Assembly (NCBI RefSeq): GCF_032191835.1
Contig: NC_083226.1
Span: 21,390,001 to 21,454,000, forward strand
Source: Heteronotia binoei
Taxonomy: Eukaryota
Reading direction: 5' to 3'
Length of the DNA stretch: 64,000 nt
Position numbers and translations under genes: made by a program. This document shows, in pieces, positions 8,951 through 64,000 of the stretch (the stretch's first letter is position 1; each line of letters opens with the position of its first letter). The notes beneath the pieces were generated by a model. The model did not search any database. It saw only the letters and a program-made list of their open reading frames with translations, and was not told the origin of the DNA.

Positions 8951-10863
8951 TTAATTTATATCCCGCCCTCCCCGCCAAAGCAGGCTCAGGCGGCTCACGT
9001 AACATAAATACAGCATTACAGTAGTAAAATAATAAAACAAATAAAATACCCCAATTTACAATTATTACTCAGTTAAGCACTATAACATCAATAAAACAAA
9101 ATTTGGTGCTATGAATACAACATAGCTTTGCATAGTGATGGTATAATAATTCCACATTAAAAAGCCAGCTGGAAGAGGACGGTCTTACAGGCCCGGTGGA
9201 ACTGGTTAAGGTCCCGCAAGGCCCGTACCTCTTCTGGTAGCTGGTTCCACCAGCGGGGAGCTGTTACCGAGAAGGCCCTCTCTCTTGTTGTTTTCAATTT
9301 GACCTCCTTCAGCCCAGGGATTGTCAGCAGGTTTTGTGAGCTAGATCGAAGCATTCTCTGAGGAACATATGGGGAGAGACGGTCCTTAAGGTAGGCAGGT
9401 CCTCGGCCATATAGGGCTTTAAAGGTAGTAACCAGCACCTTGTAACGAATCCGGTACACAATTGGCAGCCAGTGCAGTTCCCGCATCCTAGGCTGCTCCC
9501 TGGATGTGCTCCTACAGCCTGGATGTGTTCCCGCAGCCTATGTGCTCCCACTTAGGGAGTCCCATTAACAGTCTGGCCGCTGTGTTCTGCACTAGCTGCA
9601 GTTTCCGGGTTCGGCACAGGGGCAGCCCCATGTAAAGGGCATTACAGTAGTCTAACCTTGAGGTGACTGTTGCCAGGTCATTGCGCTCCAGGAAAAGAGC
9701 CGACTGCCTCGCCCGTTTCAGATGAAAAAAGACGGATTTAGCAGTGGCTGCTATCTGGGCCTCCATTGACAAGGAAGGCTCCAGTAGCACCCCTAGGCTC
9801 TTGACCCTGCGCACTGTTTTCAGTGGCGCACCATCAAAGACCGGTAGGGGAATTTCCCTTCCTAGACCGCCACGGCCCAGGCACAGGAACTCTGTCTTCG
9901 CTGGATTCAACTTCAACCCACTCAGCCTGAGCCAGCCTGCCATGGTTTGCAGCACCCGGTCCAGATTTTCTGGGACATCGCCAGGCCAATCGTCCATCAG
10001 TAGATAGAGCCGGATGTCATCAGCGTACTGATGGTAACCCAGCCCATACCTCCGGGCAATCTGGGCAAGGGGGCGCATGTAGATGTTAAACAACATCGGG
10101 GAGAGCACCGCCCCTTGAGGCACCCCACAATTAAGTGGGTATTTCTGGAACAGCTCTCCCCCAATCTCCACTCTTTGTCCCCGACCATCCAGGAAAGAGG
10201 AAAGCCATTGTAAGGCCAGCCCCTGAATCCCTGCATCGGCAAGGCGGCAGGTCAGTAACTGGTGGTTGACCATATTGAATGCAGCTGATAGGTCTAACAA
10301 CAACAGTCCTGCTGAACCGCCTCGATCCAGGTGCCGCTGGAGATCATCCATGAGGGCGAAGAGTACTGTCTCCTTCCCATGGCCCGGGTGGGAGCTGGAC
10401 TGGTATGGATCTAAGGTGAAAGTGTCATCCAGGAAACTCTGCAGTTGTGGAGCCACTGCCCTCTCAATGATTTTACCCCAAAAGGGTAAATTTGAGACCG
10501 GACGATAATGTGCCAATTTGGTCGGGTCTGATGTAATCTTTTTTAGGAGGGGGTGGACCACTGCCTCTTTAAGAGGCATTGGAAAAAGACCCTCTGAGAG
10601 GGATCTATTTACGATGTCCGTATAGGACACCTAAGCTCCCTCTGGCAAGCTTTAATTAGCCAGGAGGGGCATGGGTCCAAATCACAAGTTGTAGGGTGTA
10701 CAGTAGAGAGAATTATGTCAACTTCCTCCAGGCTGAGTGTGTTGAAGCAATCCAAGATTGAACCAGAAGACAGGCACGGAGCCTCGAGTTCACTTACTGT
10801 ATCCAACATGGCGGGGAGGTCATGGCAGAGCGACGTGACCTTGTCTGCAAAAAATTTCGCAGA
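8864..10863 (-). mobile_element. L2-clade LINE, 5'-truncated (~2 kb), RT domain largely open
   Basis: ORF 9512-10630: YRPVSNLPF.GKIIER, LLLLDLSAAF..V.H, GVPQG.VLSP.LFNIY, YADD; C-terminus LHWLPI..RI.YK...LRSS; (AAT)n tail at 8864-8950. Confidence 0.95.
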
Positions 10864-15682: not shown

Positions 15683-16711
15683 ATGGCATCTGCATTCTTC
15701 ACAATACTGTTTACGCTTCTGGTTATGGAAGTCCTCGTTGGAATGATAGCCAATGGGTTTATTCTCCTCATCAATTGCATCGACTGGTTCAGAAGTAGGA
15801 AATTATCCCCAGTTGACTTGATCCTGAGCTGTCTTGGCTTGTCCAGACTTGCATGGCAGGCAATAGGCTTACTGGATGCAACTCTGTTTTTCTTTTTTCT
15901 GGGCACCTATCTATCCAGTTCCATGCAGTTAATGTTTCCTATCTTGTTTATGTTTATGAACACAGTCAATATTTGGTTTGCCACCTGGCTGAGTGTTCTG
16001 TATTTTGTCAAGATCACCATTTTCTCCCACCCAGTTATCCTTCGGGTGAAGCAGAGATTCTCCAGGTTGGTCCCATGGCTGCTTCTGGGCTCATTTGTCT
16101 TTTCTGCTGTTTTTACTACGATTATTATCACAGGCTTGAACTATGACGCTAGGAGTTGCCATCGCTACAAATCACTTCTAAGCAACAGCAATGATTCACA
16201 AATTAAAACACCTCCCTTCTGTTGGTACTTTACCATTCTAGCTACTGCTCCCCATTTCATTGCAATCTTGATATTTGCGTCATCCACCATCTTGTTAATA
16301 GTCTCTCTGTGGAAACACACAAGGAGTGTGCAATGCAATGGAGTTGGCCCCAGAGATCTCAGCACTCAAGTTCATTTGACTGCCATCAAAGCTCTGGCTT
16401 CCTTCCTTATTCTGTACCTGTCCTGTTTTATAGCGATCATTTTGCAGTCACTAATCACCTGGCGGAAGAATCACACTTGGACTTCTGTGCTTTATCATAA
16501 CGTGACTGCGGCATATCCTTCTGGACATGCCATTATCCTGATATTAATTAACCCAAGACTGAAACAGGCATGGGTCAGAATGCTACAGCATTTAAACTGT
16601 TTGAGAGACTTAGGCTGGTTTCACACTGTGAAATTGACACGATTGTATCGCATTCAGAAAAAATCCACTAAAGTTTGCACCATTTCTGGGCAATCAGAGA
16701 GCTGCTGCTGA
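15683..16711 (+). CDS. TAS2R: bitter taste receptor type 2, open ORF 342 aa with MITE-derived C-terminal 32 aa
   Basis: TAS2R motifs GMIANGFI.LINCIDW, LSPVDLILSCLGLSRL, WFATWLSVLYFVKI..FSHP, LLIVSLWKH, HLTAIK, YPSGHAIILILINPRLKQAW; ECL2 N-glycosylation site NDS. The ATG aligns with paralog starts. Confidence 0.95.
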   Translation: MASAFFTILFTLLVMEVLVGMIANGFILLINCIDWFRSRKLSPVDLILSCLGLSRLAWQAIGLLDATLFFFFLGTYLSSSMQLMFPILFMFMNTVNIWFATWLSVLYFVKITIFSHPVILRVKQRFSRLVPWLLLGSFVFSAVFTTIIITGLNYDARSCHRYKSLLSNSNDSQIKTPPFCWYFTILATAPHFIAILIFASSTILLIVSLWKHTRSVQCNGVGPRDLSTQVHLTAIKALASFLILYLSCFIAIILQSLITWRKNHTWTSVLYHNVTAAYPSGHAIILILINPRLKQAWVRMLQHLNCLRDLGWFHTVKLTRLYRIQKKSTKVCTISGQSESCC

Positions 16712-23489: not shown

Positions 23490-24434
23490 TTAAGATTGTG
23501 CTCCACTCAAATGGCATTTAAAGTGATGTAGCATCCTGACCCATGCCTGTTTTAGTTTGGGGTTAATTCGTATCAGGATAATGGCATGTCCAGAGCGACA
23601 AATAACACTCATATTGTTAAACAGCATAGATGGCCAAGTGTGCTTCTTATTACTCAAGGTTAGTATTGCTTGCAAAGTAATTGCTAGAAAACCAAACAGA
23701 TATAGAACAATGAAGGAAACTTGAACTTTAATGGCAGTCAGGTGAACTTGCGTGTTGAAATCCTTGACACCAGTTCCATTGTGTTGCATATGTCTTGTGT
23801 GCTTCCACATAGACGTTATTAGCAGGATGGATGATGACAAAAATATCAGAAAAGGAATGGAATCTGGGGCAGTAGCTAGAATATCCATGCTTCTACAGGA
23901 GTCAACCATTTTAGTTTTTGAATCATTGGTGCTCAAAAATGATTTGTAGGGGTTGCATTTGGACAAATCATTGTTCAAGCCTGCAAGTACAGTAATTGTC
24001 ATGATAGCAGAGAAGATGATTGAGCCCAGAAGCAACCACGGTATAAGTCTAGAGATTCTTTGCTTCATTTGGAGGAAAATAGGGTGGGAGAACATGGAGA
24101 TCTTTGCAAAGTAGAAAACACTTAGCCAGGTTGCAATCCAGATACTAGCAGTGTTTGTAAAAATCCAGACGATGGGAAGCAGTAAATACATGACATTCCA
24201 AATATGATTGCTTGGATAAAAGAAATGCAGAATTTCTTCCAGAATCACTACCATCAGCCACACAAGTCTGGACAAGCCAAGACAGGTCAGGATCAGGTCA
24301 GCTGGGGATAGTTTCCAGCTTTTGAACCAGTCAATGCAATTGGTTAGGACAATAAATCCATTTCCTACCATTCCAACGAGGGTTTCAATAGCCAGAAGTA
24401 TAAAACAAATTAATGTGAATAACGGAGCTTCCAT
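23490..24434 (-). CDS. TAS2R: bitter taste receptor type 2, open ORF 314 aa
   Basis: GMVGNGFIVLTNCIDW, LSPADLILTCLGLSRL, WIATWLSVFYFAKI.MFSHP, SMWKH, HLTAIK, SGHAIILI.INPKLKQAW; start taken at MEAPLF by alignment with paralogs. Confidence 0.93.
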   Translation of the reverse strand: MEAPLFTLICFILLAIETLVGMVGNGFIVLTNCIDWFKSWKLSPADLILTCLGLSRLVWLMVVILEEILHFFYPSNHIWNVMYLLLPIVWIFTNTASIWIATWLSVFYFAKISMFSHPIFLQMKQRISRLIPWLLLGSIIFSAIMTITVLAGLNNDLSKCNPYKSFLSTNDSKTKMVDSCRSMDILATAPDSIPFLIFLSSSILLITSMWKHTRHMQHNGTGVKDFNTQVHLTAIKVQVSFIVLYLFGFLAITLQAILTLSNKKHTWPSMLFNNMSVICRSGHAIILIRINPKLKQAWVRMLHHFKCHLSGAQS

Positions 24435-32547: not shown

Positions 32548-33172
32548 TTAAGATGGTGCATCACTCACACAACATTTTAAGTGATGTATCATCCTGACCC
32601 ATGCTTGTTTCAGTTTGGGATTAATTAATATCAGGATAACAGCATGCCCAGAGGGATATACAGCACTCGTAGTTTCAAAAAACGCACTTCCAAGGGAGAT
32701 CAATTTTTCTATAAACCAGCAATGGCTGTAAAGTAATAACTACAAAAGTGGAGAAGTACAAAATAGCAAAGGAAGCCAGAGCTTTGATGGCACTTAAATG
32801 AAAGCTAATGTTGAGATCCTTGGTGCCGATTCCATTGTGTCGCAAATGTCTTACGTGTTTCCAAAGAGATATTATTAACAAGATGTGGATGACAAAAATA
32901 TCACAGATGGGATGACGTTTGGAGTAGTAACTACAATGAAAAGCAGCCTATACATGTGAAACGCTTCAGCTTCTGAAACATAGCTATTGTTCAAAAATAA
33001 TTTGTAGGAATTACAATTGGTTAAACTACTGCTTGATACTGTAGTAATAGTAATAATCATAGTAATAAAAGCAGTCAATGCAGCTGATGAGGACAATAAA
33101 TCCATTTGCTACCACTCCAATGAGGGTTTCCATGATGAGAAATGAAAAGCTGGTTATTGACGAGGTGTCCAT
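32548..33172 (-). pseudogene. TAS2R: TAS2R pseudogene (~320-bp internal deletion plus several frameshifts)
   Basis: MDTSSITSF...ANGFIVLISCID joins directly to the TM4 region; 1-2 bp indels in TM5, ECL3 and TM7. Confidence 0.93.
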
Positions 33173-33261
33173 CTTTCTGAGCGCAAAGGAAAGGAGTTTC
33201 TTCTGCTGCAATATTCACACTTTTCCTCAGCAGCACACAGCACAACGCTGGAGTCCCCTAG

Positions 33262-36424: not shown

Positions 36425-37489
36425 TTAGGATAACAGCATGCCCAGAGGGATACAAAGCACTCATAGTTAGAAAAAGTACAGCTGTCCAAGAGAGATCATT
36501 GCTTATCCAAACCTTTATTTCCTGTAAATTGAGGACTACAAAATTGGAAAGGTACAAAATAGCAAAGGAAGCCAGAGTTTTGATGGCAGCTAAGCGAATG
36601 CTGATCTGGAGATCCTTGGTGCTGATTCCATTGTGTTGCAAATGTCTTAATGTATTTTCACAGAGATATTATTAGCAAGATGGTGGATGACAAAAACATT
36701 AGAGAAAGAACGAAACCTGGAGCAGTAATGGCAATGAAGAGCTGCCAAAACAAGTGAGGCTTTTAAACTTCTGAATCATAGCTATTGTTTAAATGTAATT
36801 TGTAGGGATCACAGATGGTTAAGGCACTGCTCGATACTATGGTAATAGTAATAGCCACAGTCATAAAAGCAGAGAAGTCCACTGAGCCAAAAAGTAGCCA
36901 TGGGACCAGGCCAGAGAATCTTTGCTTCACTTGGGGGATAATTGGGTGGGAGAAAGTGGAAATCTTTACAAAGTGCTGAGCCAGGTGGCAAACAAGAAGT
37001 TGAAAATGTATGTAAAGAACACATCATGTTAAAAAAGAAATGATTCAATATAAAAATGTGGAGAAAAAAGGAAAGTGTAGTCACATCTAGAATCACTACT
37101 GCCTGCCATGTGAGTCTGGCCAAGCCAAGACAGGTCCGAATCATATCCATTGGAGAGGGTTTCCTGCTTCTGAACTAGTCAATGCAACCAATGAGGACAA
37201 TGAATCCCTTTGCTATCATTTGGACGAGGGTTTCCATGATGAGAAATGCAAAGCCGGTTATCGACAGCAATGTGGCTATCTTTATGAGCATAAGAGAGTT
37301 TGTTCTGCTGCGATATTCACACTTTCCATCAACAGCACACAGCACAACAAACCTTCCATTTAAGATCAGATCAGGGGGTTTGGAGCTATGTTCAAGTGCT
37401 GGTCCTGGATGCAAATCTTCCTAGGAAGGGCCATGTTACTAAATCTATGTCCTGTTTCTAGGATGTCATATTTACACATTTCCCCCTTC

Positions 37490-39785: not shown

Positions 39786-40733
39786 TCAAGACGGTACTTC
39801 ACTCGCACACCATTTTAAGTGATGCATCATCTTGATCCATGCCTCTTTCAGTTTGGGATTAATTCCTATCAGGATAACAGCATGCCCAGAGGGATACAGA
39901 ACACTCATCGTTTGAAATATCACAAATGTCCAGGAGTGATCAGTGTTTCTAGAAAACAGCATTGGCTGTAAACTGTTAGCTACAAAACTGGAGAGGTACA
40001 ACATAGCAAAGGAAGCCAGAGTTTTGATGGCACTTAAATGAACGCTGGTGTTGAGATCTTTGTTGCCGATTCCATTGTGTCGCAAATGTCTTATGTGCTT
40101 CCACAGGGACATTATTAACAAGATTGTGGATGATAAAACTATCACAGACGGAATGACGTTTGGAACAGTAACTGCAATGGAAAGCTGCTTACACTTGTGA
40201 AGCACTTCAACTTCTGAACCGTAGCTATTGTTTAAAAATAATTTGTAGGAATGACAACTGATAAAGCTACTGCTTGATGCTGCAATAATAGTAATAGTCA
40301 TAGCCATAAAAGCAGAGAAGGCCACTGAGCCCAGAAGCAGCCATGGGACCAGCCCAGAGAATCTTTGCTTCGCATGGAGGAAAACAGGGTGGGAGAAAGT
40401 GGTGATCTTGACAAAGTACAAAATGCTGAGCCAGGCGGCGAATGTAAGATTGACATGGCATGTGAAGAACCACGCCATGGTGATCATTAAATAGACATGA
40501 TTCAATACATAAGTGTGCAGAAAAAAGGAAAGTGTTGTCACATCCAGAATCACAACTGCCAGCCATGCAAGTCTGGCCAGGCCCAGGCAGGTCAGGATCA
40601 GGTTAGTTGGGGAGAGTTTCCTACTTCTGAACCAATCAATGCAGCCGATGAGGACAATAAACCCATTTGCTACCATTCCGACGAGGGTTTCCGTGATGAG
40701 AAGCGCAAAGCCAGTTATCGCTGAAGTGTCCAT
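39786..40733 (-). CDS. TAS2R: bitter taste receptor type 2, intact 315 aa (319 aa from the in-frame ATG at 40745)
   Basis: All TAS2R motifs present (GMVANGFIVL.GCIDW, LSPTNLILTCLGLARL, FSHP, SLWKH, YPSGHAVILI.INPKLK); NNS glycosylation site. Confidence 0.96.
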   Translation of the reverse strand: MDTSAITGFALLITETLVGMVANGFIVLIGCIDWFRSRKLSPTNLILTCLGLARLAWLAVVILDVTTLSFFLHTYVLNHVYLMITMAWFFTCHVNLTFAAWLSILYFVKITTFSHPVFLHAKQRFSGLVPWLLLGSVAFSAFMAMTITIIAASSSSFISCHSYKLFLNNSYGSEVEVLHKCKQLSIAVTVPNVIPSVIVLSSTILLIMSLWKHIRHLRHNGIGNKDLNTSVHLSAIKTLASFAMLYLSSFVANSLQPMLFSRNTDHSWTFVIFQTMSVLYPSGHAVILIGINPKLKEAWIKMMHHLKWCASEVPS

Positions 40734-40875
40734 CTTTCTGAGCATAAGAGAAATGAGTTTCTTCTGCTGGGATATTCAGCCTTTCCACCAACAGCACCCG
40801 GCACAACACTGGGGCCCTCTGCTTAAGAACTCATCTTGGAGTTAGGAGCTATTTTCAAGTCCTGACTCTGTTAAG

Positions 40876-43582: not shown

Positions 43583-44524
43583 TCAAGATGGTGCTTCATT
43601 CACACCACATTTTAAGTGATGTATCATCTTGACCCATGCCTGTTTCAGTCTGGGATTAATTACTATCAGGATAACAGCATGCCCAGAGGGATACAGAGCA
43701 ATTATCGTTTGAAATATCGCAGATGTCCAGGAGCCATCAGTGTTTCCAAAAAACAGTATTGCCTCTGTACTGATACCTACAAAACTGGAGAGGTACAATA
43801 CAGCAAATGAAACCAGAGCTTTGATGGCACGTAAATGAACATTGGTGTTGAGATCCATGGTGCTGATTCCATCGTGTTGCAAATGTCTTATGTGCTTCCA
43901 AAGAGATACTATCAACAAGACAGTGAATGACAAAAATAACACAGATGGGATGACGTTTGGAACAGTAACTGCAATGAAAAGCCGCCAACACTTGTGAAGC
44001 ACTTCAGCGTCTGAACCATAACTATTGTTTAAAAATAATTTGGAGAAATCGCAAGTGATTAAGCTACTGCTTGATACTGCGAGAATAGTCATAGCCATAA
44101 AAGCAGAGAAGGCCACTGAGCCCAGAAGCAGCCATGGGACCAGCGCAGGGAATCTTTGCTTCGCATGGAGGAAAAGAGGGTGGGAGAATGTGGTAATCTT
44201 TACAAAGTAAAAAATGCTGAGCCAGGTGGCAAATGTAATGTTGACATTGTATATAAAGAACCACACCATGGTGATCATTAAATAGACATGATTCAATACA
44301 TAAGTGTGCAGAAAAAAGGAAAACGTAGTCACATCCAGAATCACTACTGCCAGCCATGCAAGTCTGGCCAAGCCAAGGCAGGTCAGGATCAGGTCAGTCG
44401 GGGAGAGTTTCTTACTTCTGAACCAATCAATGCAGCCGATGAGAACAATAAACCCATTTGCTACCATTCCAACGAGGGTTTCCATGATGAGAAGTGCAAA
44501 GCCAGTTATCGACAAAGTGTCCAT
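43583..44524 (-). CDS. TAS2R: bitter taste receptor type 2, intact 313 aa
   Basis: All TAS2R motifs present; closest in-window relative of the gene at 39786-40733. Confidence 0.96.
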   Translation of the reverse strand: MDTLSITGFALLIMETLVGMVANGFIVLIGCIDWFRSKKLSPTDLILTCLGLARLAWLAVVILDVTTFSFFLHTYVLNHVYLMITMVWFFIYNVNITFATWLSIFYFVKITTFSHPLFLHAKQRFPALVPWLLLGSVAFSAFMAMTILAVSSSSLITCDFSKLFLNNSYGSDAEVLHKCWRLFIAVTVPNVIPSVLFLSFTVLLIVSLWKHIRHLQHDGISTMDLNTNVHLRAIKALVSFAVLYLSSFVGISTEAILFFGNTDGSWTSAIFQTIIALYPSGHAVILIVINPRLKQAWVKMIHHLKCGVNEAPS

Positions 44525-51692: not shown

Positions 51693-52640
51693 TTAAGATG
51701 GTGCTTCACTCATATGACATTTTAAGTGGTGTATCATTCTGACCCATGCCTGTTTCAGTTTGGGATTAATTAATATCAGGATAACAGCATGCCCAGAGGG
51801 ATACACAGTACTCATAATCTGAAAAATTCCAGCTGTCCAAGAGCTATCATTCCTTATCTGAACCAGTAATGATTGTATATTGATGGTTACAAAACTGGAG
51901 AGGTACAAAATAGCAAAGGACGCCAGAGCTTTGATGGCAGCTAAGTGAACGCTGGTGTTGAGGTCCTTGGTGCTGATTCCGTTGTGTCGCAAATGTCTTA
52001 TGTGCTTCCAAAGAGATATTATTAACAAGACTATAAATGACAGAAATATCACAGAAAGAATGAAACCTGGAGCAACAACTGCAATGAGAAGCTGCCAACA
52101 CAAGTGAGGCACTTTAACTTCTGAATTATAGCTATTGTTTAAATGTAATTTGAAGGGATCACAAATGGTTAAGGCACTGCTCGACACGGCGATAATAGCC
52201 ATTGTCATAGTCATAAAAACAGAGATGGCCACTGAGCCCAGAAGCAGCCATGGGACCAGCCCGGAGAATCTTTGCTTCACTTGGAGGAGAATTGGGTGGG
52301 AGAAGATGGCGATCTTGACAAAGTAAAAAATGCTCAGCCAGGTGGCAAAAAAGAGGCTGACAGTGTATGTAAAGAACCACATTGCGTAAAAAAGGAAAAA
52401 GAAATGCTTCAATGCAAAAGTGTGCAGAAAAAAGGTAAGCAGAGTCACATCTAGAATCACTATTCCCAGCCATGCGAGTCTGGTCAAGCTCAAGCAGGTC
52501 AAGATAAGGTCAGTCGGGGAGAGTTTCCTGCTTTTGTACCAGTTAATGCAGCCCATGAGGACAATAAACCCATTTGCTACCATTCCGATGAGGGTTTCTA
52601 TGATGACAAGTGCAAAGCTTGTTATCCATGAAGCGTCCAT
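51693..52640 (-). CDS. TAS2R: bitter taste receptor type 2, intact 315 aa
   Basis: All TAS2R motifs present; first ATG is at 52640 (the track start at 52652 is GTG). Confidence 0.96.
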   Translation of the reverse strand: MDASWITSFALVIIETLIGMVANGFIVLMGCINWYKSRKLSPTDLILTCLSLTRLAWLGIVILDVTLLTFFLHTFALKHFFFLFYAMWFFTYTVSLFFATWLSIFYFVKIAIFSHPILLQVKQRFSGLVPWLLLGSVAISVFMTMTMAIIAVSSSALTICDPFKLHLNNSYNSEVKVPHLCWQLLIAVVAPGFILSVIFLSFIVLLIISLWKHIRHLRHNGISTKDLNTSVHLAAIKALASFAILYLSSFVTINIQSLLVQIRNDSSWTAGIFQIMSTVYPSGHAVILILINPKLKQAWVRMIHHLKCHMSEAPS

Positions 52641-52782
52641 CTTTCTCAGCACAAGAGAAAACAGTTTCTTCTGCTGCGATATTCACACTTTCCCTCAACA
52701 GCACACAGCACAACACTGGGGCCCTTTGTTTAAGAACCCATCTGGGCGTTAGGAGCTATTTTCAAGTGCTGGCCCTGTGAAG

Positions 52783-56544: not shown

Positions 56545-56613
56545 TTAAGATGGTGCTTCATTCACATGACATTTTAAGTGATGTATCATCCTGATCCATG
56601 CCTTTTTCAGTTT
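56545..56613 (-). pseudogene. TAS2R: isolated TAS2R 3' fragment (helix 8 + stop)
   Basis: Minus translation KLKKAWIRMIHHLKCHVNEAPS*; nothing upstream aligns to TM1-TM6. Confidence 0.85.
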
Positions 56614-57208: not shown

Positions 57209-58153
57209 TTAAGATGGTGGTTCACTCACATGACATTTTATGCGATGTATCATCCTGACCCATGCCTGTTTCAGTTTGGGATTGATTAATATCAGGATAA
57301 CAGCATGTCCAGAGGGATACGCAGCACTGATATTGTGGAAAAATACAGATGTCCAAGAACCATTGTTTCTTCTCCAATACAGTATTGTTTGTAAACTGAT
57401 GGCTAGCCAACAGGAGAGGTACAAAGCAGCAAAGGAAGCCAGAGCTTTGATGGCACTTAAATGAACATTGGTGTTGAGATCCCTGACTCCAATTCCATTG
57501 TGCTGCAAATGTCTTGTGTGCTTTCACAGAGATATTATTAACAAGATTGTGGATGACAAAAATATCACAGAAGGGATGAGATTTGGAATACTACGTGAAA
57601 TGACTAGTTCCATACAAGTGCGAGACTCCTGAATTTCTGAATCATAGCTATTATTCAAAAGTAATAAGTAGGGATCACAAATGGCTAAGTCACTGATAGG
57701 TCTTGCGAAGGCAATAATAGTAATCAAAGCAGAGAAAACTACTGAGGCAAGAAGCAGCCATGGGATCAGGCTTGAGAATCTTTGCTTCACTTGGAGGAAA
57801 AGAGGGTGGGAGAAGATGGCGATCTTTGTTAAATACCAAACACCAAGACAAGCAGCAAACCAAAGATTGACAGTTTCTGTAAAGGACCACAAGATAACAA
57901 CACTTAAATGTACCGGTTCCGTTAGATAGGTGTGAAGAAAAAAGGACAACATAGTTACATGCAGCATGACTAGTGCCTGCCACATTAATCTGGATAAGCC
58001 AAGACAGATCAGGATCAAGTCAGTGGGGGATAGTTTCTTGCTTCTGAACCAGTCAATGCAATTGATGAGGACAATAAATCCATTTGCTACTATCCCAACG
58101 AGGGTTTCCATGATGAGAAGCACAAAGCTAATTATCAAGAACAAGGTTGCCAT
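57209..58153 (-). pseudogene. TAS2R: TAS2R with a single premature stop (SLW to SL*, TGA 57524-57526), otherwise intact 314 codons
   Basis: ORFs 57524-58225 and 57209-57508 are in the same frame; all motifs intact. Confidence 0.93.
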
Positions 58154-58297
58154 CTCTCTAAGCCCAAAAGAAAAGTGTAGAGTTTCTTCTGCTGCGATAC
58201 TCACACTTTCCCTCCAGCGCAACACTGGGTCCCTCCGTTTATGAACACAAAAACATCAGGGTGGCAGGAGCTATTTTTGTGTGCTGGCTCTGGGAAG

Positions 58298-59343: not shown

Positions 59344-59509
59344 CTGCCCAGTTTGCCCAGTCTGATCAGTTTGGAACCGTCTGCGGTGCTCCGTGAGTTG
59401 GCCTGCTGTGGAGTGTCAAGCCAGAGTGGACGTCTGCTACCGTGGTTGGTGTGCAGGAGTGGAGACTAGCTCGGAGAGGTTTGGAACAGTGGTGCTGAAG
59501 GTTTTCATC

Positions 59510-60950
59510 ATGGCTCTAATTGCAACAGCTCAGATAGTGGGAAAGCTCACCTCCACTAATTACAATGCGTGGGCTCTCCGCTTGGAGCATTATCTCAAAC
59601 GAGAAGGTTTATGGAAAATTGTCGAGTCGCCTCCAGACCAGCTGGATGAGGAGGACACTGCCAAGGATGAGAAGGCATTGGCAACAATAGTCCTGAGTGT
59701 GGGAGACGATCAACTGATACACCTAACCGATAAGCGCACATTGAAGGCTGCTTGGGACTCTTTGAGAGCAGTATATGTGCAAGTTACAGCAGGTTCATTT
59801 ATTGCACTTACCCAGCGGCTTTATAGAACTGTAATGAGACCGGGGGAGTCCGTTAGAGCACATCTGAATGCTCTCGCTGAATGCTGCAATGAGTTGGCTG
59901 AGAGAGGAAAAACTGTGTCAGAGGAAGATAAGGTTTATCTTATCCTGAGCTCGCTGTCGACAGAGTATAATATGCTAGTAACTGCTTTGGAGACGGTGGA
60001 GGCCAGCAAACTAACTTTGGAATATATTACCGGGCGTTTACTGGATGAGGAGCGTCATTTGCAGCAGTCTGGTTTATCAGCTTGGCAGCATACCGGACTG
60101 GGGGAGTCTGCAAAGCAGGAGGCCAGCAGGGAAGCGTCAGCCGGGAACCGACTTGGAGCAAAGCCGGAGGTTGCCCTACATGTAAAGAAATGTTTTCATT
60201 GTGGCTCTTTGAAGCACCTGAGGCGTGAGTGTCCTGAGGGGAAAGTCAGACAAAAGTATGGAGGCCGGTCTGCAGGAGCTGAGGGTTACTCAAATGCATC
60301 TCTTGTGGTGACTGACAACGCTGAGTCATCTGGAGTGTGGATTATTGACTCTGGTGCGTTGTAGATTTTTTGCAAGGATGAGAATTTACTGCAAAATAAA
60401 CATTCACCACAACGGCAAACTGTCTGCCTGGCTGATGGCAGCAGTTCAAAGGTACTCTGGCAGGGGTGTGTGGCTTTTCCCAACTTGTGTCACACATTTC
60501 CTGATGTTTTATGTGTGCCAGCTCTAGAGAATAACTTGCTAAGCGTGTCTGTGCTGGACAAAGTTGGATCTACTGTCACGTTCACTGATAACACCTGTAA
60601 GATAAGCAGAGATGGTGCAGAGCTTGGAACAGCTAAATTGCTAAATAATGTGTATGTGTTAGACACAAATACTATGACTGCTAAAACTGTATTAAATGTA
60701 CCACAACATGATAATTGCGTGCACCTTTGGCACAGAAGATTAGGGCATGCTAATTTTCATGCAATTGATAAAACACTGCAAATTGTGGGGAGAAATTGTG
60801 TGAAGGAATGTAAACAGTATTTAGACTGTGATGTGTGTAAGCATGCCAAAACAACTGCATTCCCGGTTGCACAGAGGAGTGACAGAGTAACGAATAAGCC
60901 CCTGGAATTAGTTCATGCCGACGTAATTGGGTCATTTGCCAATAGTCATT
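59510..60950 (+). mobile_element. Ty1/copia gag-PR-IN(start), 3'-truncated
   Basis: gag (LTSTNYNAWALRLEHYLKREGLW), zinc knuckle CFHCGSLKHLRREC, protease WIIDSGA, GAG-pre-integrase LWHRRLGH..CDVC, integrase PLELVHADV; one in-frame TAG at 60362; no RT, RNaseH or 3' LTR. Confidence 0.93.
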
Positions 60951-63616: not shown

Positions 63617-64000
63617 TTAAGATGTGGCTTCACTCACATGGCATTTTTAGTGGGGTATCATTCTGACCCATGCCTGTTTCATTTTGGGATTAATCTCTTC
63701 CTTTGAGAACGCACGCATAGCTGGTCTTGAGGTCAAAAGGAGATTGAGGAAGAATCGCACTGCTACAGGACCAACCCTAAATCAGACTTTTCCCTGCAGC
63801 CGCTGTGGCCGGACCTGCCTGTCCCACATTGGTCTTGTCAGCCACCAGTGAGCCTGCAGCAAACGTGGACTATTGCACCCTTCTTAAATCTTCGTTCGCG
63901 AAGCCAAGCCGAGAGAGAGAGAGAGAAAGAGAGTATCTGGATAACAGCATGCCCAGAGGGATACACAGCACTCATAGTATGAAAAAGCACAGGTGTCCAA
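63617..64000 (-). pseudogene. TAS2R: TAS2R pseudogene, 3' part (continues beyond the window)
   Basis: YPSGHAVI.I [insertion] INPKMKQAWVRMIPH*KCHVSEATS*; RTE insertion plus a TAA nonsense codon. Confidence 0.9.
63695..63933 (+). mobile_element. RTE-clade LINE 3' fragment inserted in TAS2R TM7
   Basis: FPCSRCGRTCLSHIGLVSH zinc-finger-like C-terminus, CTTCGTTCGCGAAG hairpin, (GA)n tail. Confidence 0.85.

Follow-up and report, generated by a model that had tools for sequence, protein, structure and literature searches.

The window, that is, the whole 64,000-nucleotide stretch of the Heteronotia binoei genome analysed here, is occupied by a TAS2R gene cluster, in which a tblastn search with one receptor recovered eight TAS2R-like loci and two small fragments (Table 1). 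Five of these loci are open, one carries a single stop and two are decayed. All six readable genes matched the Pfam TAS2R family (PF05296) with E values of 1e-45 to 1e-77 and 155-261 bits vs. a cut-off of 22.2, and the window genes are paralogs with 52-78% identity in the tblastn comparison. The first of the open genes, W1, corresponds at 100% identity to database protein P0001.

Table 1. Features of the window (Cys1 and Cys2, codons of the two cysteines of the pair; X19 and X20, 19 and 20 residues between them)
Feature	Coordinates	Strand	Cys1	Cys2	Basis
W1, open TAS2R, 342 aa	15683-16711	+			ORF; Pfam TAS2R E 9e-77
W1 residues 153-182 (ECL2 with TM4 end and TM5 start)	16139-16230	+			sequence; AF2 secondary structure
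W1 Cys1 (C159)	16157-16159	+	TGC		codon reading; AF2 secondary structure
W1 Cys2 (C180)	16220-16222	+		TGT	codon reading; AF2 secondary structure; TAS2R14 alignment
W1 C-terminal extension past the usual TAS2R end	16610-16711				
W2, open TAS2R (X19)	23490-24434	-	23955-23957	23895-23897	ORF, Pfam
Pseudogene A (internal deletion, frameshifts, stops)	32551-33181	-	33013-33015, TGT, kept	32950-32952, TAT (Tyr)	tblastn, codon reading
Pseudogene B (frameshifts, stops)	36426-37264	-	36811-36813, TGT, kept	36748-36750, TTT (Phe)	tblastn, codon reading
W3, open TAS2R (X20)	39786-40745	-	40254-40256	40191-40193	ORF, Pfam
W4, open TAS2R (X20)	43583-44524	-	44051-44053	43988-43990	ORF, Pfam
W5, open TAS2R (X20)	51693-52652	-	52161-52163	52098-52100	ORF, Pfam
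Short TAS2R-like match, small C-terminal fragment	56548-56613	-			tblastn
W6, TAS2R with single in-frame stop (codon 213, 57524-57526) (X20)	57212-58162	-	57677-57679	57614-57616	tblastn, codon reading
Short TAS2R-like match reaching past the window end, probably a further gene	63934-63999	-			tblastn
372-aa ORF, translation resembling a retroelement reverse transcriptase	9512-10630	-			by eye
323-aa ORF with gag-like region and CCHC zinc-knuckle motif, probably an LTR retroelement, adjoining W6	59393-60364	+			

Codon reading bore out the central observation of the first-pass annotation, namely that two cysteines, Cys1 and Cys2, stand 19-20 residues apart across ECL2 in all five open genes as well as in the single-stop gene (Cys-X19-Cys in W2, Cys-X20-Cys in W1 and in W3 to W6). 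The spacer between them is highly variable, as had also been described, except for an N-x-S/T sequon lying between the two cysteines, which reads NDS in W1 and W2 and NNS in W3 to W6. In the alignment of the five open genes (W6 is outside it), Cys1 and Cys2 are the only extracellular cysteines, apart from C9 (TM1) in W2; that is, neither cysteine has another extracellular partner available. The annotation had further pointed out that the second cysteine is mutated in both decayed copies, which is correct (to Tyr and Phe codons, with Cys1 retained in both), and that Cys2 is lost only in such old pseudogenes, which is true inside the window but not beyond it, where annotated full-length gecko paralogs lack Cys2. 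We considered the losses in the pseudogenes as a sign of constraint on the pair and rejected them as such: there are two cases, both in highly diverged copies, and intact paralogs exist with the same Cys-to-Tyr state. Since annotated full-length gecko paralogs also lack Cys2 or both cysteines, the pseudogene substitutions are weak evidence of constraint. Neutral decay alone would be expected to produce two such losses.

The position of the two cysteines in the receptor fold was assessed on an AF2 model of W1, computed with the C-terminal extension trimmed and from a 106-sequence alignment. The model (mean pLDDT 83.9, pTM 0.75) has seven transmembrane helices and helix 8, in which TM4 spans residues 117-155 and a short helix (161-166) precedes TM5, whose first residue is 179; in ECL2 the pLDDT is just 59-73. 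Its top 20 Foldseek matches were all to TAS2R46, TAS2R4, TAS2R14 or TAS2R16 (E 1e-11 to 1e-7, TM-score 0.68-0.77). In this topology Cys1 (C159) lies four residues beyond the end of TM4 and Cys2 (C180) in the first turn of TM5, i.e., at the adjoining ends of the two helices. Pairwise alignment with human TAS2R14 places C159 at I156 and C180 at S176; F175 of TAS2R14 is 5.35 (PMC13095663), hence S176 is 5.36, and under the same numbering it adjoins residues that line the pocket entrance. The description of the pair as intra-ECL2 therefore needs amending in part, since Cys1 is in the loop but Cys2 strictly belongs to the first turn of TM5 (5.36).

W1 Q82 aligns to TAS2R14 F82 (3.25), which means that W1 has Gln, not Cys, at 3.25, and all five open window genes are free of cysteine at positions 62-90 (at or near 3.25). 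These genes agree with the statement, made for mammalian receptors in the first-pass annotation and for TAS2Rs in the literature (PMC13172528, PMC11574016, PMC11641376), that the class A TM3-ECL2 disulfide is lacking. At the sequence level the open window genes have two cysteines at the ends of ECL2 with no TM3 partner, as in an S1P1-type arrangement, and the class A-type pairing of a TM3 with an ECL2 cysteine is absent from them and seen only in other reptile paralogs.

To place the pair phylogenetically, we collected close homologues (120 by word search, 101 after removal of fragments) and computed a tree of these 101 and the five open window genes, with the ECL2 columns excluded. In this tree, 69 rows make up a squamate clade with strong support, with lacertids and the amphisbaenian Rhineura on one side vs. 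geckos on the other. Both cysteines are present in every lacertid row that spans both columns, and likewise in Rhineura. In the gecko part the pair is the majority state, from which there were roughly seven independent departures; about 18 of 40 gecko proteins have it. The pair has been retained on either side of this split in sequences that are only ~45-50% identical. Under parsimony in the same 69-sequence clade, C159 is the slowest ECL2 column (5 changes), and C180 changed 11 times, vs. a median of 17 for ECL2 and 23-31 at the residues flanking C180; the loop residues around the cysteines change 2-5 times more often than the pair itself.

Outside this clade the picture is different. An exhaustive profile search of the TAS2R family returned 1103 cluster representatives, and the 98 new full-length ones within the best 150 examined (mammals, amphibians, anoles, skinks and turtles included) do not have the C159/C180 pair, except for one divergent Gekko kuhli paralog, which belongs to another clade and whose pair looks convergent. 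ECL2 is free of any cysteine in 65 of 109 aligned TAS2Rs (the 98 representatives, W1 and 10 reference sequences). The suggestion that the pair is a lineage feature is thus upheld by alignment of squamate, bird and mammal receptors: apart from the Gekko kuhli paralog, the pair is confined to one gecko and lacertoid TAS2R clade. Cys1 has a wider distribution: turtles, alligator, skink and birds also have it, usually combined with Tyr or His in the Cys2 column. In the nearest outgroups (alligator, a turtle and a skink) the residue that goes with Cys1 in that column is Tyr or Asn. Because outgroups and birds carry it without Cys2, Cys1 is old in sauropsids; Cys2 is a derived partner, probably reached from Tyr by a one-step change. 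The aligned bird TAS2R40-like proteins (P0088-P0120) keep Cys1 and have a second cysteine five residues downstream, just ahead of the sequon, with His or Tyr at the Cys2 column in most of them.

The pair is not universal in its own clade. Among gecko paralogs that appear intact, some retain one cysteine only (P0007, P0013 and P0027) and others neither of the two (P0015, P0021, P0022 and P0030), which means that the pair is not indispensable. Four annotated full-length proteins of the window's own genome (P0020, P0027, P0033 and P0059) have Cys1 and Tyr in place of Cys2. In other paralogs a replacement partner is found, with the second cysteine slipped to position 178 (P0028) or 182 (P0006), or a cysteine at 170 (P0045). 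A gecko subclade with Tyr for Cys2 includes P0018, P0020, P0023, P0033 and P0059, three of which belong to the window's genome, and five of its six members have a new cysteine at W1 position 78, where ECL1 meets TM3 (about 3.21, a single turn above 3.25). This suggests that Cys1 swapped its partner in this subclade to one at the top of TM3, in what would be a class-A-like bridge. Finally, P0004 (Heteronotia) and P0010 have four ECL2 cysteines, at 159, 165, 169 and 180, a set compatible with two nested or crossed disulfides.

Cysteine counts over the extracellular zones (the N-terminus; ECL1 with the TM3 top; ECL2 with the tops of TM4 and TM5; and ECL3) were even in 56 of 64 sequences of the squamate clade. 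An additional extracellular cysteine was found in 8 of the 11 sequences with a single canonical cysteine vs. 3 of the 45 with both (Fisher 1.6e-5 with phylogeny ignored), and only about four independent compensations lie behind the former figure. Phylogeny-aware paired contrasts of Cys1 vs. Cys2 pointed the way the model predicts but were not significant (median p 1), being too few (4-5 on supported branches).

A similar bookkeeping was applied to a second squamate TAS2R clade, gathered with P0185 (P0185 and P0293-P0348) and made up of geckos, skinks, a cordylid, lacertids, anoles, Sceloporus and Pogona. Among its sequences without a cysteine at the top of TM3, 25 have two ECL2 cysteines, one has three, 10 have one and 10 have none; a single TM3-top cysteine occurs together with one ECL2 cysteine in 12 sequences, and three TM3-top cysteines with one in ECL2 in a further one. 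That is, all 13 sequences with a TM3-top cysteine have exactly one cysteine in ECL2 (Fisher 4e-6, uncorrected for phylogeny), and no sequence of this clade combines one or more TM3-top cysteines with zero or two in ECL2. The sequences with two ECL2 cysteines are mostly Cys-X15/16-Cys sequences of iguanians and lacertids. Paired contrasts of the TM3-top cysteine vs. the second ECL2 cysteine went in the expected direction but were too few and not significant (median p 0.5). The pattern of this second clade is relevant to the published claim that T2Rs as a family have no TM3-ECL2 disulfide. There are also turtle, skink and anole receptors, and other gecko paralogs, that combine a TM3-top cysteine (positions 76-82) with an ECL2 cysteine.

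We favor, with moderate confidence, the hypothesis of an intramolecular disulfide between C159 and C180, which would close the glycosylated ECL2 and act as a loop constraint of this squamate TAS2R clade. Such a bond would link the start of ECL2 (Cys1) with the first turn of TM5 (Cys2). The 19-20-residue loop, which bears the N-glycan, would thereby become a covalently closed ring at the pocket mouth, with its anchor on the top of TM5 beside the pocket entrance. It could substitute as loop constraint for the TM3-ECL2 tether that TAS2Rs are said to miss, with Cys1 as the older anchor and Cys2 as the partner gained by the window's clade, probably from an ancestral Tyr. By extrapolation from other GPCRs (PMC9442423, PMC8779880, PMC11641376), the bond might serve oxidative folding and surface delivery as well as the geometry of the pocket vestibule; we infer both the bond and its part in folding, delivery and the shape of the pocket entrance from the alignments and the model. 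The idea of the first-pass annotation that an intra-loop disulfide is a distinct feature of the lineage gains from the clade restriction, the parity of cysteines and the compensating cysteines; at the same time the feature is not indispensable, as the apparently intact paralogs without the pair make clear. Since the clade tolerates loss, slippage and exchange of partners, the bond is evidently not needed by every paralog.

Alternatively, it is possible that the two cysteines are conserved for their function without being bonded to each other, for instance as free thiols for metal or electrophile sensing or as the halves of intermolecular disulfides in receptor oligomers. The occurrence of Cys1 alone in turtle P0122, skink P0126, koala P0180 and a few gecko paralogs, and the stronger constraint on Cys1 than on Cys2, are what would be expected under this alternative. 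However, the strong bias toward even numbers and the compensating gains of a second cysteine favor intramolecular pairing, as does the mutual exclusion of the TM3-top cysteine and the second ECL2 cysteine in the second clade. Moreover, when two cysteines lie close to each other on the oxidising face of a membrane protein, they are as a rule bonded. Hence, we regard unpaired or intermolecular thiols as unlikely. A bond between Cys1 of the window receptors and a cysteine outside ECL2, i.e., a class-A-like TM3-ECL2 bridge with Cys2 incidental, has a precedent in the turtle, skink, anole and gecko paralogs with a cysteine at 76-82, but the alignment contradicts it outright for the five open genes, in which the stretch 62-90 is devoid of cysteine, and W1 has Gln at 3.25; we have rejected this candidate for the window genes and attach hardly any probability to it.

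It might also be that the pair has no specific role and is an inherited quirk of a young, fast-duplicating cluster, which looks conserved through kinship. The window genes are indeed paralogs of 52-78% identity, C180 gave way to other residues many times among geckos while the gene was kept, and the phylogeny-aware tests did not reach significance, all of which would fit such a scenario. Kinship, on the other hand, does not readily account for the persistence of the pair across the gecko vs. lacertid and amphisbaenian split at ~45-50% identity, for the 2-5 times more frequent change of the surrounding loop residues, or for the replacement cysteine that often accompanies the loss of the pair, and we consider this scenario quite unlikely. 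All three alternatives appear less likely than the C159-C180 disulfide.

Beyond the window's clade, the same sequence comparisons lead us to propose, more tentatively and at somewhat less than even confidence, that reptile TAS2Rs use ECL2 disulfides, at odds with the statement that T2Rs are without them across the family, and that an old anchor cysteine following TM4 pairs in them with clade-specific partners. Turtles, skinks and some geckos and anoles would use a cysteine at the TM3 top (a class-A-like bridge), iguanians and lacertids one that follows the anchor by 15-16 residues, birds one that follows it by five, and the window's clade the one at the TM5 top. Such partner switching would remodel the lid of the ligand pocket as the receptors diversify.

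These hypotheses matter since structural thinking about bitter receptors is based on human TAS2Rs, whose ECL2 is untethered and flexible (PMC13172528), a picture that reviews extend to the whole family (PMC11641376). The flexibility of ECL2 has been invoked to explain broad tuning. If a large lizard clade staples the loop and other reptile clades tether it to TM3, loop constraint would be a variable trait within the family and could be linked to the breadth of tuning, to folding and to expression at the surface. Cys-to-Ser mutants and reducing agents would then provide simple handles for studying the function of non-mammalian receptors, whose expression is often difficult. The broader pattern, with an old anchor cysteine and clade-specific partners, the TM3-top cysteine among them, is the more interesting lead; if confirmed, it would qualify the textbook generalisation that the T2R family lacks the TM3-ECL2 disulfide.

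Among known systems, the closest to the window receptors are the human class T receptors with solved structures, TAS2R14, TAS2R46, TAS2R4, TAS2R43 and TAS2R16, which share the Pfam family and the fold. Like the window receptors, human TAS2Rs have no cysteine at 3.25 and have a sequon in ECL2 (PMC13172528), and the family is reported to be without the C3.25-ECL2 bond and to have a flexible, glycosylated ECL2 (PMC13172528, PMC11574016, PMC13095663, PMC11641376). Unlike the window receptors, human TAS2Rs have no cysteine pair across ECL2: in pairwise alignments the two columns read Ile and Ser in TAS2R14, whose single ECL2 cysteine is unrelated, and Ala and Ile in TAS2R4. The class A C3.25-ECL2 disulfide is comparable to the proposed bond in being an extracellular bond that constrains ECL2 above the ligand pocket, and it is resembled by some reptile TAS2Rs outside the window that combine a TM3-top cysteine with a single ECL2 cysteine, whereas the open window receptors have no cysteine at or near 3.25.

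Disulfides within ECL2 have been described or proposed in other receptors. The lysophospholipid receptor S1P1 has an intra-ECL2 disulfide and no TM3-ECL2 bond (PMC8779880), and in this it is like the arrangement proposed here, a GPCR without the C3.25 bridge and with a disulfide inside ECL2. However, S1P1 is an unrelated class A lipid receptor whose bond is seen in a crystal structure, as opposed to the inferred bond of the window receptors, and the latter would bridge the full length of the loop, between a point shortly past TM4 and the first turn of TM5. For olfactory receptors, a C169-C189 bond within ECL2 has been proposed (PMC9442423). These are likewise chemosensory GPCRs, with two conserved ECL2 cysteines 19 residues apart and a proposed intra-loop bond, but of their three cysteines (C169, C179 and C189) C179 also keeps the canonical bond to TM3, and their loops are not homologous to that of TAS2Rs. 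In the literature on TAS2Rs that we covered, which is incomplete such that a prior description is possible, we found the absence of the TM3-ECL2 bond and no description of ECL2 cysteine pairs. The pair described here is therefore likely a known structural theme of GPCRs, met in a known receptor family, of which the TAS2R version is apparently new.
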